Part shown: positions 8,946 through 20,385 of the stretch, piece after piece
Layout: every line of letters starts with the position of its first letter
How positions within the stretch are numbered: the first letter of the stretch is position 1
Origin: Epithemia pelagica
Taxonomy: Eukaryota; Protista; Bacillariophyta
Length of the DNA stretch: 64,000 nucleotides
NCBI GenBank assembly: GCA_946965045.2
Contig: OX337231.1
Coordinates: 3,782,001 to 3,846,000 of the forward strand
Direction of reading: 5' to 3'
Position numbers and translations under genes: made by a program
The notes under the pieces: model-generated
The model's input: the letters and a program-made list of their open reading frames with translations, nothing else
Database searches by the model: none
Told to the model about the DNA's origin: nothing

Positions 8946-10228
8946 GGTATCAAACAACTACGAGCAAAAATGGTGATTAAACTTGTGAGAGGCAACACAC
9001 AATCGATGCAGACTCTGATCCTTTTGTTGGTGACAATCGGCCTCGAAATGATAACAAACCGGGTTTTAAAAGCATATCCGTTGAACGTAGGTCCAAGACC
9101 AGGCACTTTGGATAGTTAGAGCAATGGCGAGCGGTTCCTCTCGTCAACGGATCTATGGGCTCTAGTGAAAATAAGCATGAACGGCTCCAACAGAGTCCAA
9201 CGGATGTCCCAGCGGCTCCAGCTGATTATTCGGTCGCATTTGGGGATAGTTACGTACAATACAATAGTATGCCTCTATCTAGCTAGCAACAACGCCAATC
9301 CGTAGAGGAGCGACCTGACAACGAGAAGGTCACAGTCCTTCAATGGATAAGAACAGTCATGTCGTACCAAAAGCAACAGCTGCACAATTCCTGGATTACT
9401 CAATCATGAACCAGGAAAGGTAGTGGTACAGAAACCCCTGTGGCGAGCTGTTGTTGTTGTTCTACTTGTTGTTGTGGTTGGTTGGCCATGGGTTCGGTCG
9501 TTGCTCCTGACACACACATTGAGTAAAAAATGGTGGTGATGGGGATATTCGATTTACCTCTGGAGAGTCGACCAAGACTAGTGTGTGACTCTATGAGTTT
9601 GCGTTGCGCAAGTGTACCTACTACACATAAAAACAAAACACAAAGGACGCATGGAGCTATAGTAGTGAGTGGCTTTTTGGTGCTGCGTGAGAGGAAAAGC
9701 GACGACGTTTGTGGTCACTCTCTCTCGGCCACTGACTCCACGGCAACACAGCTCGGATACTGTTCTGTTTCTGGGGGTAGCTCTACTATAGGAGCGAAGC
9801 AGTGTTCCTCTGGTATTCAAGGCGGGCTCTCTTGCGATTGCGATGTGTGTAGCAACAATCAAAACTTTCTCCAGAACAAAGAGAATCGTGGGGGAAGTTG
9901 AGGGAGCATCATCATCATCATCATCATCATCATCAAGGTCATGTCAATGTCAAAGAATCAACCACGGCACATGACAGTCATGGTGTTCCCGTTTTGTGGG
10001 AATGCATCCTGCGATCGCAACCTTGTCGCAAGTCATGGACTGTCAGAAAAAGAGTACCGTTAGACCGAGCCTCCCGCAACACGTTCGCAATCCCCGCTCG
10101 CAGCAGTTTGCGACTCGGGGATTCCATCACCACAAAAATATCCACGATGCTCTCACAACTCCAAACCATTCAAAACGCAAAAGCATCCAGCAACACACAC
10201 CCTCCTCACCTGCAATCAAACCAGAACC

Positions 10229-11137
10229 ATGTCGATCACCGTTCAGTCTTTTCTCACTGCCTACTTGGAACCTTCCTTCCAAGAAAGTTTGAATCGTTTG
10301 TACCATGATTTGGGAAATCAATCTCCCGAAACATGGGCCAAGAATCTCTACCAGACTTTGTGTAAGGACCCGACCCATCCGCATGCCTCACTGCTCAACC
10401 GAGATCGTAAAAAGTGCCTCCAGTTGGAGTACGATCTGGTCAATGCCTGGGAAAATGCATCGAGTCCAGACGACTTTGAACAAGACATTGTCAACATCTT
10501 TCAAGTATCGCGCTTGCGCAAAATTCTCTTTATCTGTCTTGTCATGGACCGTGCCCAGTCCTTGTATCGAATGCAGCTACCATCCTCCACCTATTATGGT
10601 ATGCATTGGTATGCGAAGGAACATGTCGCACTTCTCGAAGGAAACGAAGAAGACCATTCCATCGAGGCAGCCTCCATTCCTTCGCTCATGGACAAGGCCT
10701 TGGAAAGTCTCAAAATGGCCTTGACCACGTACAAAGGCTCGCCCACCATGAATCGCCGTCTCTACAAGATCATTCATACCAAGGCATTTGGTCTGCTGCA
10801 AGACGCGGATATTGCTCGTTGGTCTCTTCCAGCCTTGGCAACCTTTGTGCAGCGACCGATGACAACTACTACAACTATTAGCACCTCGTTGGTTTCGGGC
10901 ACGAAACGAAGTGCCCCCGCTCCCACGCTCACCGAGACAGCGCAGGAAAACAAGGAGCTTGTGGAGCGTCTCAAACGTGCCAGAGTCGGAGTGTCCGATC
11001 CGAACCTGATTGTTCAACGTTATGTCAATATTTACAATGAATCATCATCTTCATACATTCGACATGCATCGTCAGTGACTGAATTGCCATTCGTACAGAT
11101 ACTATTTGAAAACTATTCCTTGAAAGAACTAATATAA
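10229..11137 (+). CDS. Unrecognised helical-domain family, copy A (302 aa)
   Basis: ATG at 10229. The N-terminal ~200 aa align by eye with 14269-16101 and 19711-20385. Confidence 0.8.
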   Translation: MSITVQSFLTAYLEPSFQESLNRLYHDLGNQSPETWAKNLYQTLCKDPTHPHASLLNRDRKKCLQLEYDLVNAWENASSPDDFEQDIVNIFQVSRLRKILFICLVMDRAQSLYRMQLPSSTYYGMHWYAKEHVALLEGNEEDHSIEAASIPSLMDKALESLKMALTTYKGSPTMNRRLYKIIHTKAFGLLQDADIARWSLPALATFVQRPMTTTTTISTSLVSGTKRSAPAPTLTETAQENKELVERLKRARVGVSDPNLIVQRYVNIYNESSSSYIRHASSVTELPFVQILFENYSLKELI

Positions 11138-11760
11138 ATCCATCGACGTAAGAGACACTATAACTTTAAAGACATGCCTCCGATTCATTTTCCTGCTGTG
11201 TTCCGATAGATTTTCCTGTTTCATGATAGGATGTTCTGATGAGAATATAGATCGCGAGACCAATGGTCCGATCAAAAATACACCACTCTGTTTTATGAGC
11301 ACATCCGTGAAAAATACGTCCAAGACCAGACATTATAATTTTTTAGGATGGCGGCAAGTGTATCTGATCCGGTGAACCCGTTTTCAGTTAGCCGACGGCA
11401 TCTGGCGTGCGAGGCTACACTGGGTTTGGTCCATGAATGGAAGAAATAAGAAATCCATTGGCGTAAACACCTTTATAATTGAAAGATATGTCTCCGACAA
11501 GACTTCTTGTTTCACCATAATATAATCGATCGGGGAATTGGTTGGTGCTCGATCAAATAGATACCACTTTGGGCTTTATGAGAGCATCCTTTGGAAGTAG
11601 GTCCAAAAGAATTATGATGGTGGTGAGCGTGTCAATAACTGAATGGTAGGCAATAGTGAAAAGGAAAAATTAACCGCTGAACCCATTTTAACATAGCACG
11701 GCATTTTGCGAGCGAGGTGACAAAGGGTATGGTTCACTGAGTGTCATGTTTAGTGGCCTC

Positions 11761-13821
11761 CTAAAATGGGTTGGGTTTGGTTAAACTTGGACGGTCGTCT
11801 TCTCTCCACCTGTTCAAGGAGTCAAAGTGGTGTTTTGCATCCTCCGCACACAACACTTTGGCAACCGGGGTCTGGAAGGAAACCGTATTACCGTCACGAC
11901 TTTCTTGATTGAAGACCCTGTCAACCATTTCTTGTAGCTTGACATGATGCTGGTGGACCCATGTGTTACCGGGGAAATCGGGATCTTCGGGGTCAATCAA
12001 ATCTGCATAAAAATACATGAGTGGAATGCATTGTCCCGATGTGGCCAACACGTGCACTAGACCGTTGCGGCCGACAAGGGTATCGCCCCGTTCGTGAAAA
12101 CGTTGTGTGGTGAGCATTCCCCGGAGACGCGCCACCATGATGCAGATTCGTCCGTATCGACCACAATACGAGTAAGGATCGTTGGCGGTATATATTCCAT
12201 CCCCAAAAGACGAACCGTTGGTAGAAACCCGAATCAGTTTGGAATCTCGTTCCTCTTTTGTGAGCAATCCGTTGGTTTGGATTCGACCTAAATTTTCTAG
12301 CCGTGTCCAGTGGTATCCAATATCCACATGGACGGGTTTGCGTTGATGCCGATACTCGTTTTGTGTGGTAATCAGCTTTTCCGCCATGGGAATCATATCA
12401 TCCAATGCAATGGCCTGGATCCAACTTGTTTCTTTCATGGCGTATGAGACCGGTGTTGTCTGCAACCTCAGACGTGACTGCTCCAGGGATTGTTGGAGTC
12501 GGCATTCTTGTTGGAGATTCAACACGAGTTCCACCAATTGCCAGGCTCGTCCCGTATGTGTGGAGGCAAAGTGGACATGTTCCAGTCCTCTTGTATAGCG
12601 TTGATCACAGAGATCGAATTGTTGTTGCGAGGCCCTGGCATAGTCGGCATCGCTGCGCCAAATTAGCCCTAATTCTTCGGCACCGCTCTTGGCACATTCA
12701 ATGACGGGAGCATCCAAATCATCTAGTTTCTGGGCATGCTTACAGGAAGGCCAGTAATATGTGATGCCCTCCATCGGGCAAACCGCTTCTGTTTTATCTT
12801 GAATAGATACTGGAAATGGTTTCGTATGCTCGTCTTCATACACACTCCCAAGTTCGACAAGAGATTCTTTAATTGCTTGTGCGAGATCTGCATCATATTC
12901 TTCATCCAGTTCTGTGGGCTGCTGGTGAGGAACGCCATCTTTTTCTGTTGGTTGTAGTTCTTTGCCTGTGCGATCCTTGGAGTTTTGTTTCTGTGCGCGA
13001 TCGCCAATGCATGGCTTGGGATACAGGGTGCCTTTCATGGAATCGGCCTCTTCTTTGGCATCTTGACCGTGCATTACGGAAGGCTTCTTTTTCTGGTCGT
13101 CTTCATTCCCAAACTTGACGGCGAGAGATGCATCAATAGCTGCGGCTAGATCTGCGTCGTAATCCTCCTCTTGCTCTACTGTATTTTGTTTGGGAGAATC
13201 CAAGAGTTGGCTCATGTCCTGGAAGGGTACAACAAGAGCCCTGGCATTGGCCTCGTCGCTCAAAGTACTCTGATTTGGTGCTGCAGCACCAACTCGCAGA
13301 GCATTTCCTTCAGTATTCTGACTGCTGCTGGTGTACTTTCCCTGGTGGTGTACATTCCCAAGTTTGGCTAGAGATACCGTAAGAGCCGTTGCGAGATCTG
13401 CGTCATAATCTTCGTTGGGTTCTGTACGTTGCAAGTCTGAAACACCACCTTTTTCGCCTGGCGGTGGCTTTGAGTGTGTGTCGTAAACGAACACTGCGTC
13501 TTTGAGGGATTCCTGCATGGCTCTGGTAAGGTCGTCATCATCATCCTCAACCTCGTCGAGGATATGGCTGCCATACAAATCGTCGTCCTCGTCGACGACA
13601 TGGTTGCCGTACGAGCAGGCCTGTGGATCTACTTCCGAGACACTTTGTTCAAGTCCACCACGGGTTATACTGGCCGGGTGATCTTTGCATTTGGTCCTAT
13701 CCACGTCTCCTACTAAGGCTCTTTCGGAAGGACACTCTTCATTTGGGGACCGTGTTGTCGCGGATTCAGCTTCCCTCTCAAGGGTCTCTTCTTGGTGCTG
13801 TTCGTTTGTTCTGGAATTCAT
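11761..13821 (-). CDS. UIM-repeat plus PARP-like (H-Y clade) ADP-ribosyltransferase domain protein, 686 aa
   Basis: Four UIM-like repeats (DDDDLTRAMQESL, DYDADLATALTVSL, DYDADLAAAIDASL, EYDADLAQAIKESL). C-terminal GYHWT..NLGRIQTNGL..NGSSFGDGIYTA..YG, then VHVL..GQCIPL. Confidence 0.75.
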   Translation of the reverse strand: MNSRTNEQHQEETLEREAESATTRSPNEECPSERALVGDVDRTKCKDHPASITRGGLEQSVSEVDPQACSYGNHVVDEDDDLYGSHILDEVEDDDDDLTRAMQESLKDAVFVYDTHSKPPPGEKGGVSDLQRTEPNEDYDADLATALTVSLAKLGNVHHQGKYTSSSQNTEGNALRVGAAAPNQSTLSDEANARALVVPFQDMSQLLDSPKQNTVEQEEDYDADLAAAIDASLAVKFGNEDDQKKKPSVMHGQDAKEEADSMKGTLYPKPCIGDRAQKQNSKDRTGKELQPTEKDGVPHQQPTELDEEYDADLAQAIKESLVELGSVYEDEHTKPFPVSIQDKTEAVCPMEGITYYWPSCKHAQKLDDLDAPVIECAKSGAEELGLIWRSDADYARASQQQFDLCDQRYTRGLEHVHFASTHTGRAWQLVELVLNLQQECRLQQSLEQSRLRLQTTPVSYAMKETSWIQAIALDDMIPMAEKLITTQNEYRHQRKPVHVDIGYHWTRLENLGRIQTNGLLTKEERDSKLIRVSTNGSSFGDGIYTANDPYSYCGRYGRICIMVARLRGMLTTQRFHERGDTLVGRNGLVHVLATSGQCIPLMYFYADLIDPEDPDFPGNTWVHQHHVKLQEMVDRVFNQESRDGNTVSFQTPVAKVLCAEDAKHHFDSLNRWREDDRPSLTKPNPF

Positions 13822-14268
13822 GATCTAGGTGCTCGTTTCGGCGAGATTACTTTTAGATATGGATCCCAATGATCACACGGCCAACGACAATGGTCCTTTC
13901 GGACCTACCTGACTCACTGCATCGTTTCCAGGACGGATGCGTTGCGGTACGTGAAAGTCGCATTTGCTTGTACATCGTTCCCACCAAAACTTGATTTCCC
14001 ATTTTGATCTCTATCAACTCCGCAAATGAGACGTGGAAAGTTGCGGGTCTCGGCTTGTTCACAAATTCTCAGCGGTTGTAGTGAATCTCTTTTATTTAAC
14101 CCAATTGGAGAAATAATTGATATCCAAACGATGAGGACTACAATATGCGACCGGATGGATGTACACAGGAGAGACAGACAGACGCTCGATCCGCATTCCA
14201 TCCGTTATCCCAGAGTCGCCTTTCCTCATAAAATTGAAAACGACACAAACCTCAAGCGACAGACAAAC

Positions 14269-16101
14269 ATGGAAATGACCAAAGTGCGGATATCGCCAAC
14301 AGCAGCGTCCTCCTCGTCAGCATTGGACCATTCACGTTGGAATCATTCTGTTTCCCAGATCCAACGGTACGTTGCCCGTTTCGAAGACAGCGTCTTTCAA
14401 AAGGCATTGCAACGACTTCAGGTGGACAAGGCCCGTCATTCGTCGGATTCCGAGGTCTGGGCCCAGGCAGTCGCCCTAGCTTGGGGCAATGCGCAGGACC
14501 CCCACCATGGTCGTGCCGTCTTGTTGGAACAAGACCGACATGTGTGTATGAGCCTCTTGTATGACATGGTGGATGATTGGGCCACGGTGGGATTTTCTCC
14601 CCACTTTGCCCGAGCCATGCGCACCGTCTTTTCCCTCCGGCGCATTGTGGAGATTCTGGCAGTGGGCTTGGTCCTGACGCGGGCGCAGACACTCTATCAA
14701 GTGATTCTTCCGGGGAGTGCGACTCGAGATGGGCGACCCCTTGTGGGAACCCATTGGTTTTGTGAACTTCATAATAGTACAATGATGGGACCACAAACCA
14801 CTGCTGAGAAATCTCCCTCCACCAGTCCACCGGTATCCTCCATCACTTGTGGAGCAACCATTCCAAATCCGAGCCGAAGCTGCATGAAAGTGCCCGGCAC
14901 CATGGATCGTCGGTTATATCGCTTGTTGTATAGTCCGGAATTAGGTCTACAACGCATTCCAGCCATTGCTCAATGGTCCCAACCGCAAGCGGCACCCCTG
15001 GTGGTCCATGGGTATCCTCCCGCCCCTACACGGGTCCGTCCTCCACCACGACAAGACCCACCCACCCGCACCGAACAACCAATGACCACCAATACTACCG
15101 CATGGGTGCGTGGTCCACAGCAGTCGCTCCCGAACCAACAAGCCATGAGGATTCCAACCCAACCAAACGCGCCATTTCATCCTCCTGCAGGTGTCATTGT
15201 CCTCCTGGGTGGATCGATTCCACAAACCTTTCCCGACGATTTGCACTTTGTGTGTGGGTGTTCCAATTTTGAACCCGTCGAAAGTGACTTTGTCGTGCGC
15301 ACACCAAAACACGACGACGACTGGAGGAATGCCGAGTCCAAACCAGAACGGATTCGGCACCTCGTGCAACAAGGTCTCGCCTCTTGGGCCGAACCCCAAA
15401 CACCACAAGACCCAAACGACGAGGAGGATGCATCTGGTTCCTCTTGTATGGTAGCAAGACCAGCCGCACCTCGGTCTATCGCCGCCGCGACCACCAAGAC
15501 ACAGCAGACACTGGGCCTTACCGTGGGCCACAATGAACTGTTTCGAGAAATTGCTCGTTTCCATTTTCAAGAGAAAAAACTGCATGCTGCCCCAGTTGCA
15601 GACGAGTCCCAGCAGCAGCACATCACCTCCTCCGCACCGACTGCTGGTGTGGATCATCCAAGAAACGGCAACAACAACAATAACACTAACAATTGTTCGG
15701 TTTCTCCCGTGCGTCCGGAAACCCGAGACGTGATACACAAGGCCCATTGCGTGGCACAACACCTCCAGAAAAGTAGTAGCAAGCATTCTCGACGACGACA
15801 CGCCAAGACAAAGGCTCTTGCTGTTGCCAAAACAAAGAAGAAGAAGGCGCGCTTTCGCATTTGGAAACCCTTGTTGGGACCCACGGTTCGACGCCTCAAG
15901 GCAAGTCAGTGGTCGACGGTCCAGTTTGTCGAAATTACCGACAATGTCGGTCATTGCAAACACATGCTCGAGCCTCTGTTGCGCAAAGCACGACAGTTGG
16001 CCGTCACTTCATTGTCGTTGTCATGCTCCCAACCAACGAACGGTGTGCTTCCCCAACCTGCTGCTACCGGCACCAACGCAGCGGCCCGCATGGAAGCATG
16101 A
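14269..16101 (+). CDS. Unrecognised helical-domain family, copy B, with a long Pro-rich and basic C-terminal extension
   Basis: Likely start MEMTKV at 14269. Shares FQ..L.RL, WA, DP.H, C..L.YD.V..W, F..RR..IL...LV..RAQ.LY and TM.RRLY..GL...I..W with copy A. Confidence 0.75.
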   Translation: MEMTKVRISPTAASSSSALDHSRWNHSVSQIQRYVARFEDSVFQKALQRLQVDKARHSSDSEVWAQAVALAWGNAQDPHHGRAVLLEQDRHVCMSLLYDMVDDWATVGFSPHFARAMRTVFSLRRIVEILAVGLVLTRAQTLYQVILPGSATRDGRPLVGTHWFCELHNSTMMGPQTTAEKSPSTSPPVSSITCGATIPNPSRSCMKVPGTMDRRLYRLLYSPELGLQRIPAIAQWSQPQAAPLVVHGYPPAPTRVRPPPRQDPPTRTEQPMTTNTTAWVRGPQQSLPNQQAMRIPTQPNAPFHPPAGVIVLLGGSIPQTFPDDLHFVCGCSNFEPVESDFVVRTPKHDDDWRNAESKPERIRHLVQQGLASWAEPQTPQDPNDEEDASGSSCMVARPAAPRSIAAATTKTQQTLGLTVGHNELFREIARFHFQEKKLHAAPVADESQQQHITSSAPTAGVDHPRNGNNNNNTNNCSVSPVRPETRDVIHKAHCVAQHLQKSSSKHSRRRHAKTKALAVAKTKKKKARFRIWKPLLGPTVRRLKASQWSTVQFVEITDNVGHCKHMLEPLLRKARQLAVTSLSLSCSQPTNGVLPQPAATGTNAAARMEA

Positions 16102-19710: not shown

Positions 19711-20385
19711 CTACTCCTTTGTTTTCGGTTCCTCTTTTGGGCACATGGTAACAGAACCAGTTTCACCATCAGTCCGTAGTGGCTGGAACCACCAACGGTG
19801 CAAGACTGGATCCTGCTCGCACAGGCCCAGAATTTTGCTTTGCAGCAACCGATCCAACTGCTTGGAATAATGGTGATTTGAACCCTTTGGATCCAATACT
19901 GTGATACGGGCACGTTCCAGGACCAGACAAACACTCAAAATGCGAAACAACCGACGACGTTTAAACACCAAGACAATGGCCTCTTCAAATACGCTGTCGT
20001 CTTGAGGATCAGCTGGTGGGGAATTCGAATCGTACGCTTGCCAGTGATCCACCAATTGGTACAATAGTTGCAGACAGGCTTGAGAATGTTCGTGCACCTG
20101 GAGGGCTTGCATGTTGGTTGGATCCTGGGCCAAGGTTTGGTACACTGTGGTGGCCCACATGGGTCGATCCTTGCCATGCAGAGACGCCGAACTATCGGCC
20201 CATTGGTACAAGCGTTCCAACCGTTCTTGATACGGCAAGTCATTGTAGGCTTGTACAAGGGGTGCAATCAGCGCCATGGCCGCAGTCAAGTTTGAGGAAC
20301 GATTGCTCTCGTCTGGGGACCAATAATCTCCTCCATTGGTCCCAGTGGGACGCTGTTTCGGGGGAGTCACAGTCGTCGGGGGCAT
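19711..20385 (-). CDS. Unrecognised helical-domain family, copy C (almost the domain alone)
   Basis: First ATG at 20385. YQERLERLY..WATTVYQTLAQDP..CLQLLYQLVDHW..FEEAI..VFKRRRLFRILSVCLVLERA..LGL..W aligns with copies A and B. Confidence 0.8.
   Translation of the reverse strand: MPPTTVTPPKQRPTGTNGGDYWSPDESNRSSNLTAAMALIAPLVQAYNDLPYQERLERLYQWADSSASLHGKDRPMWATTVYQTLAQDPTNMQALQVHEHSQACLQLLYQLVDHWQAYDSNSPPADPQDDSVFEEAIVLVFKRRRLFRILSVCLVLERARITVLDPKGSNHHYSKQLDRLLQSKILGLCEQDPVLHRWWFQPLRTDGETGSVTMCPKEEPKTKE

Follow-up and report, generated by a model that had tools for sequence, protein, structure and literature searches.

A diatom gene of Epithemia pelagica that joins four UIM-like motifs to a predicted PARP-type ADP-ribosyltransferase fold

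The coupling between ADP-ribosylation and ubiquitylation, as represented by the PARP9-DTX3L pair, the Deltex proteins and the ubiquitin-interacting motifs (UIMs) of PARP10, is an active field of research that is known almost only from animals. PARP10 (ARTD10) carries out mono-ADP-ribosylation and needs its two UIMs, which bind K63-linked ubiquitin chains, and the PARPs with a His-Tyr-[Ile/Leu/Tyr] (H-Y-[I/L/Y]) triad are mono-ADP-ribosyltransferases (mono-ARTs) (PMC9149570). The RING-DTC module of Deltex proteins binds ADP-ribose and ubiquitylates it, or attaches ADP-ribose to ubiquitin (PMC7500938, PMC7442474, PMC7615817). The gene described here is located on the reverse strand, at positions 11761-13821, of a stretch of 64,000 nucleotides from the diatom Epithemia pelagica (assembly GCA_946965045.2, contig OX337231.1, positions 3,782,001 to 3,846,000), which is referred to as the window. 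It is an intact and uninterrupted single-exon open reading frame (ORF) of 686 codons, the gene call of a public ENA contig (L007) gives an identical product of 686 aa, and the contigs of four runs cover the gene with no joints across the ORF. The protein is read here as a ubiquitin-guided PARP-like mono-ART with a probability of about 0.5, so that the term mono-ART is used at about even odds and not as a finding, the residue Trp505 being part of the reason.

The layout resembles that of PARP10 in that UIMs are placed at the N-terminal side of a PARP-fold domain with a His-Tyr-hydrophobic triad. However, the window protein has four UIM-like motifs instead of two, none of the other PARP10 domains was detected in it by a Pfam scan, it carries an N-terminal three-helix extension that starts in a helix similar to the inverted-UIM helix called MIU, and sequence orthology with PARP10 was not detectable.

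The DNA repeats reported at 12884, 13148 and 13394 in an initial annotation of this sequence correspond to exact copies of the octamer AGATCTGC, with no further site in the window. The number of octamers is not significant by itself (3 versus a mean of 1.8); the three sites lie in register within a four-copy 48-nt direct repeat (12856, 13120, 13366 and 13501), whose copies are 60-75% identical to the one taken as reference. Within an acidic N-terminal region, they code for four acidic-L..A...S motifs, and the motif cores are located at residues 98, 143, 225 and 313. When the protein was scanned with the UIM-style pattern [DE][LIVM]..A[LIVMA]..S[LIVM], 4 matches were obtained, against an average of 0.0065 per sequence when the protein was shuffled 2000 times, and the motifs agree with the UIM consensus (acidic run, hydrophobic-x-x-Ala-x-x-x-Ser). 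The presence of four UIM-consensus motifs, also proposed in the initial annotation, was in this way borne out at both the protein and the DNA level.

A structural analysis of the C-terminal region of about 270 residues predicts a PARP-type ADP-ribosyltransferase (ART) fold with an extra helical part at its N-terminal side. AlphaFold2 models were obtained from a ten-sequence alignment (predicted local distance difference test, pLDDT, 76) and from a 101-sequence alignment (pLDDT 92.8, predicted template modelling score, pTM, 0.87), and the top matches of both were exclusively PARP catalytic domains according to two independent aligners. The top 50 Foldseek matches were all PARPs (PARP12, 10, 13, 15, 14, tankyrase, PARP4 and PARP1), the best one with an E value of 3.8e-6 and a probability of 1.00, and PARP10 was matched with an E value of 5.9e-6. 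In a VIA-align search of 48,161 representative chains, PARP15 reached Z 12.0 (root-mean-square deviation 3.4, 148 residues), PARP13 Z 11.7 and PARP10 Z 11.4; each of the 16 chains with Z of at least 9 was a PARP-family domain, and the other ART clades (DarT, exotoxin A, diphtheria toxin and Tpt1) gave Z values of 5.3 or lower. PARP clusters, including PARP12-like ones, were also retrieved by shape from the ESM Atlas, and language-model features led to PARP clusters as well. Starting at about model residue 40, the helical part can be aligned to the helices at the N-terminus of PARP catalytic fragments. An ART fold had been set beforehand as the point on which the proposal depended, and the AlphaFold2 model, Foldseek and VIA-align coincided in a PARP-type one. 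At the sequence level, a search of PDB chains with the whole protein gave only chance matches to gyrase B, and the family profile found no PARP among PDB sequences, that is, no sequence kinship with PARP10.

Conservation of the active-site residues was counted over the 154 rows of the family alignment. Of these, 151 have His504 and 152 have Tyr544, both glycines of the G-x-G element are found in all 154, and Gln597 is kept in 152. The residue that follows the His is aromatic in 152 rows (Tyr in 128, Trp in 16 and Phe in 8). The host genome encodes one canonical H-Y-E PARP, and hhalign pairs YHWT with the WHGT of this protein, Thr506 being kept, and GDGIYTA with its GAGIYLA. The His in YHWT and the Tyr in GIYTA (residues 542-546, 12184-12198) are therefore placed as first claimed, and both are near-invariant in the family. 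The predicted strand GLVHVL (residues 587-592) carries Val589 at the position where relatives have the catalytic Glu, so the absence of this Glu also stands. Eight residues before the conserved Gln (Q-8), Glu is found in 65 of 149 representatives within the motif [DH]E[IV]VLxxSxQC, which makes the family look ancestrally H-Y-E, and the Glu-to-Gln spacing in the family equals that in the canonical PARP of the genome. The VIA-align range to PARP10 covers model residues 43-220 and chain residues 817-1006; if this stretch is gapless, model residue 201 (Val589) would presumably lie opposite Ile987 in the PARP10 numbering that we assume.

A word-based search with residues 380-686 retrieved ten relatives, including two Epithemia clementina proteins and two 'deltex' proteins from the Joint Genome Institute (JGI; P0008 and P0010), in which the homologous stretch is followed by a RING finger and a DTC domain (E 8e-43 and 1e-37). 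When a profile was run against 1.84 billion cluster representatives (clusters at 50% identity), the family was extended to 856 representatives at E <= 0.001 and 391 at E <= 1e-30. The named members are all diatom (Fistulifera, Thalassiosira, Chaetoceros, Skeletonema, Seminavis, Epithemia and a Bacillariaceae metagenome-assembled genome), and a precomputed Pfam PARP annotation is absent from all family members. Diatom proteins named 'deltex' or 'deltex-like' (from Fistulifera solaris, Seminavis robusta 'DTX2', Thalassiosira, Chaetoceros and Skeletonema) contain the same PARP-like domain, with 26-45% identity and E values down to 1e-50, and in all of them it is without Pfam annotation. These proteins differ from the window clade in having RING-DTC, and many of them also the Glu and a good MIU-like helix, whereas the window clade has UIM repeats instead.

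Among the best 153 representatives, a downstream RING-DTC module was found in 74, including a Deltex-type family member of the host genome itself (L005, C4:1825944-1829111), in which the domain is followed by RING and DTC, the pieces having been compared separately. The reading frame of L005 shifts directly after the GDGIYT motif, by an intron or a break. This arrangement recalls PARP9-DTX3L and Deltex, where a PARP-fold domain is functionally paired with RING-DTC; the mammalian pair is a heterodimer of separate proteins, while the diatom proteins are covalent fusions. The window protein contains neither RING nor DTC according to the Pfam scan and is outside the 74 RING-DTC carriers. The link to ubiquitin/ADP-ribose crosstalk suggested in the initial annotation turned out to be stronger than claimed, since the same domain is fused to the Deltex RING-DTC in about half of the relatives.

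A MIU-like helix was found in 67 of the same 153 representatives, usually at the N-terminal edge of the conserved domain, and in none of the shuffled sequences, and the family consensus begins xxDxxLAxxLQxxE. MIU is an inverted-UIM helix (approximately D-hydrophobic-x-L-A-x-x-L-Q-x-x-E), and the MIU-like helix is considered as a lead only. Among the representatives P0007-P0153 it often occurs in two to four tandem copies, as in P0010 (residues 146-262). The copy in the window protein fails the pattern, with Ser398 where relatives have Leu; the 95% identical paralog has Leu398. Altogether, the family is best described as an apparently diatom-restricted new branch of the PARP fold, and two of its features are new, the H-aromatic-T motif and the domain combinations, in which one protein unites the partners of the animal PARP-Deltex pair; in the window, UIMs take the place of this partnership. 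Full-text searches on deltex, ADP-ribosyltransferase and DTC with diatoms or stramenopiles, of limited literature coverage, found no description of the domain. Deltex-family genes are reported to be induced when diatoms reproduce sexually (PMC12618581), and this points to a possible biological context for the family.

In a quick unrooted FastTree analysis of 101 domains, the window protein falls in a clade of eight (support 99), all of them without the Glu and none with RING-DTC. A larger group of 47 (support 97) encloses this clade; its members have the Glu displaced by one position or have lost it. Of the 101 tree rows, 51 have Glu at Q-8. From the match between the Glu-bearing form and PARPs we infer the order of these events. 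With the same UIM pattern as above, UIM-like repeats were found in 6 of the 9 clade representatives checked, with 6 motifs in P0012, 4 in P0001 (the cluster that holds the window gene and its 95% paralog), 2 each in P0002, P0003 and the Epithemia protein P0005, and 1 in P0011; none was found in P0004, P0006 or P0019. P0012 (L010 8001-11885, same ENA sample) is a protein of 1294 aa that is 63% identical in the ART-like domain, and three of its six motifs are identical, which indicates that the UIM array grows and shrinks by recent tandem duplication. An origin independent of PARP10, put forward in the initial annotation beside an ancient one, received support from the position of the gene, nested in a family in which all named members are diatom and others carry MIU-like helices and RING-DTC. 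Judged from these sequences, the combination of UIM and ART looks independent of PARP10, and because of this nesting the layout common to both proteins is most likely convergent.

According to the proposed mechanism, the UIMs would dock the protein on ubiquitin or on proteins marked with ubiquitin or polyubiquitin, and the H-Y-V domain would take ADP-ribose from NAD+ and attach one unit of it to the protein so marked, to one close by or to ubiquitin, in the manner of H-Y-[I/L] PARPs such as PARP10. The DTC domain binds ADP-ribose and ubiquitylates it (PMC7442474, PMC7615817), and that of the Deltex-fused paralogs could read or ubiquitylate the resulting mark, so that the work of one fusion protein would be divided between two proteins.

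A number of observations weigh against the mono-ART reading. Scanned singly, the UIMs are all under the Pfam cut-off of 21 bits (PF02809/PF23625; best 16.6 bits), and on the whole protein UIM_2 reaches 14.7 bits, also below it. Pfam PARP (PF00644, gathering cut-off 26.7 bits) gives 17.5 bits (E 0.0031) with the whole protein and 18.8 bits with the domain alone. In the hhalign comparison of the 101-sequence family alignment with the canonical PARP of the genome and 72 PARP1/2/3-type domains, E values of 0.002-0.005 were accompanied by a low probability (8-15%), only the His and Tyr motifs were aligned, and the C-terminal half, including the Glu strand, had no confident alignment to canonical PARPs. 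The Glu is lost and the triad becomes H-Y-V, and the assignment of Val589 to the Glu position is based on motif spacing, predicted strands and alignment ranges, not on a residue-level structural alignment. The inactive pseudo-PARPs PARP13, RCD1, SRO1 and TASOR are among the closest structural neighbours. In the N-terminal part of the protein, residues 1-388 show a ratio of non-synonymous to synonymous substitution rates (dN/dS) of 1.07 (7 synonymous and 27 non-synonymous changes) when the window gene is compared with its 95% identical paralog by the Nei-Gojobori method, in which the counts are small, and UIM 4 of this paralog contains a Pro. For the organism, the records list no RNA run, and contig coverage cannot be taken as a sign of transcription. 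Finally, Trp505, which was missed in the initial annotation, occupies the Gly position of the PARP H-G-[ST] motif, where PARP10 has Gly888, which we take to lie directly after His887, and is the natural equivalent of the change G888W. This change defines the standard catalytic-site mutant of PARP10 (PMC11266678).

The main rival of the mono-ART reading is a pseudo-PARP adaptor. It would keep the fold and perhaps the binding of NAD+ or ADP-ribose, would have lost the transfer reaction, and would use the UIMs to connect ubiquitinated proteins with partners, for example the Deltex-fused paralogs, in a way comparable to the pairing of PARP9 with DTX3L. This role, possible if somewhat doubtful, is favoured by the loss of Glu throughout the clade, by Trp505, by the structural matches with PARP13/ZAP, RCD1/SRO1 and TASOR, whose Z values (10.0-11.7) are as high as those of active PARPs, and by the absence of RING-DTC from the clade, which may work in trans with RING-DTC paralogs. 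PARP13/ZAP, RCD1/SRO1 and TASOR have likewise lost the Glu, but they also lack the His and/or have a closed NAD+ pocket, and PARP9 is without the His (Q-Y-T). The diatom family differs from both groups, as it keeps the His, and with it the Tyr and the G-x-G. Known pseudo-PARPs usually lack the His and/or the Tyr (PARP13, PARP9: PMC9149570), and here both are retained together with the S..Q element. An inactivating effect of Trp505 is also made less probable at the sequence level by the aromatic residue after the His, which is family-wide and includes the half of the members that keep the Glu, and by the occurrence of the same H-aromatic-T motif in the active ART DarT1. Since there would be little reason to keep the Glu in a dead scaffold, its conservation beside the aromatic residue in half of the family makes such a scaffold less expected.

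The His motif of DarT1 was the sole significant match of the family profile among PDB sequences (E 0.0038). In Pfam, two of the ten relatives give any PARP match, and DarT was matched with an E value of 0.14 in one member. DarT, a bacterial ART that modifies thymidine in single-stranded DNA, shares with the family the H-aromatic-T followed by ..N...I...GL; however, its fold match is weak (Z 5.3 versus 12.0 for PARPs), and it is the toxin of a toxin-antitoxin pair with no ubiquitin-related modules. Both sequence matches would agree with an active ART that modifies something other than protein side chains. It might act on the ends of nucleic acids, like DarT and some mono-PARPs, or on ubiquitin, at its C-terminus or at a different residue, and the UIMs would then present ubiquitin as the substrate. 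The four ubiquitin-binding-type motifs adjoining the ART domain, and the association of the family with DTC, which handles ubiquitin-ADP-ribose chemistry (PMC7500938, PMC7615817), point in the same direction. This possibility is considered clearly unlikely, as the fold is far nearer to PARPs (Z 9-12) than to DarT and no nucleic-acid-binding domain was detected in the window protein by the Pfam scan; moreover, the substrate is not readable from the sequence.

Diatoms would use the same coupling logic as animals in two forms, the covalent ART-RING-DTC fusion and the UIM-ART of the window. If active, these proteins would offer natural models in which ubiquitin-ADP-ribose marks are made and read by a single chain, and they would indicate that a PARP fold can be active with an aromatic residue next to the catalytic His. 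In a broader and rather unlikely scenario, the diatom PARP branch would have been ancestrally a one-chain MIU, H-Y-E ART and Deltex RING-DTC protein making ubiquitin-ADP-ribose marks, from which the window clade would have split off as an H-Y-V enzyme guided by UIMs. Its targets would be ubiquitin or ubiquitinated proteins, which it would ADP-ribosylate in spite of a Trp at the position that inactivates PARP10, and its nicotinamide pocket would then be differently built. The features of the gene and of its cluster are collected in Table 1.

Table 1. Coordinates of the features of the UIM-ART gene and of the related copies in its cluster (positions in the window, except those preceded by C4).
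Feature	Position	Strand	Basis or remark
Complete single-exon ORF, 686 aa: UIM x4, helical region, PARP-like ART domain	11761..13821	-	ORF list
UIM-like motif 1, residues 91-107	13501..13551	-	Repeat copy 13501-13548; pattern match; UIM_2 E 0.008, 16.6 bits
UIM-like motif 2, residues 136-152	13366..13416	-	Repeat copy 13366-13413; pattern match; no Pfam match alone
UIM-like motif 3, residues 218-234	13120..13170	-	Repeat reference copy 13120-13167; pattern match; UIM_2 E 0.18
UIM-like motif 4, residues 306-322	12856..12906	-	Repeat copy 12856-12903; pattern match; Pfam UIM E 0.096
Helical N-terminal part of the conserved domain, residues 389-493	12343..12657	-	Three long helices, model residues 2-32, 34-65 and 88-104
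Degenerate MIU-like helix, residues 390-402	12616..12654	-	Within predicted long helix
Predicted PARP-type ART core, residues 494-640	11902..12342	-	VIA-align, Foldseek, Atlas shape search
His504-Trp505 of Y-H-W-T (residues 503-506, 12304-12315), PARP H-G-[ST] motif	12307..12312	-	Family alignment, hhalign
Tyr544 of G-D-G-I-Y-T-A, PARP G-x-G-I-Y-F/L-A motif	12190..12192	-	Family alignment, hhalign
Val589 at the catalytic Glu position, 8 residues before Gln597	12055..12057	-	First residue of predicted strand, model residues 201-204
L002, inverted 95% identical intact 686-aa copy	C4:3775730-3777787		4.2 kb before the window
L003 (P0002), 45% identical copy, two UIMs	C4:3850451-3851662		
L004, decayed fragment, in-frame TGA, catalytic-type His to Asn	C4:3887327-3887650		

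The gene family forms a cluster that spans about 110 kb around the window gene. In the comparison with L002 described above, the dN/dS value of residues 389-660 was 0.17 (14 synonymous and 8 non-synonymous changes), so that, as far as these changes indicate, the catalytic-type domain appears constrained and the UIM region free except for the motif cores; purifying selection on the ART domain is compatible with both the mono-ART and the pseudo-PARP readings. The cluster, with its 95% inverted copy, its 45% copy and a stop-codon fragment in which the His is changed to Asn, together with the N-terminal dN/dS value of about 1 and the lack of an RNA run on record, could be expected of a recent duplicate that is decaying or no longer functional, in a region of fast turnover, and whose motifs would be relics. 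The chance of this is very small, given that both 686-aa copies are intact, that the ART domain has the low dN/dS value mentioned, that the layout of UIM and ART is kept in the Epithemia relative P0005, and that the contig depth in the run X2, suggestive only as the kind of run is unknown, is higher over the ORFs than between them.

In X2, which comprises 39 million letters of contigs, the longest of 19.6 kb, the depth along positions 9600-15500 of the window was 8-40 between ORFs and 110-300 over ORFs; two other runs of the same study showed flat depth. X2 may be RNA, which would suggest that the gene and both of its neighbours are transcribed without introns.

An ESM Atlas cluster of mollusc PARPs, in which 45% of the members have a UBA domain, provides an unrelated pairing of ubiquitin binding and PARP.

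Both genes flanking the ART gene and a third stretch contain an unannotated domain of about 210 aa (10229-11137 on the forward strand, 14026-16101 on the forward strand and about 19906-20319 on the reverse strand), with 29% identity, an E value of 1e-26 and no Pfam match. A conserved system formed by the flanking genes and the ART gene was considered and dropped: the occurrences of the domain beside ART paralogs in L002 and L010 are paralogous segments of the same species or sample, and the domain is absent from the loci of the relatives P0004 and Epithemia P0005 (L008 and L009). The linkage may be due to segmental duplication only. In L007, the neighbouring gene with this unannotated domain (12547-13923, compared with window positions 9899-11290) is only 88% identical and is present as a tandem pair, which suggests another haplotype beside the ART gene, or a duplicated region that was collapsed or expanded in the assembly.

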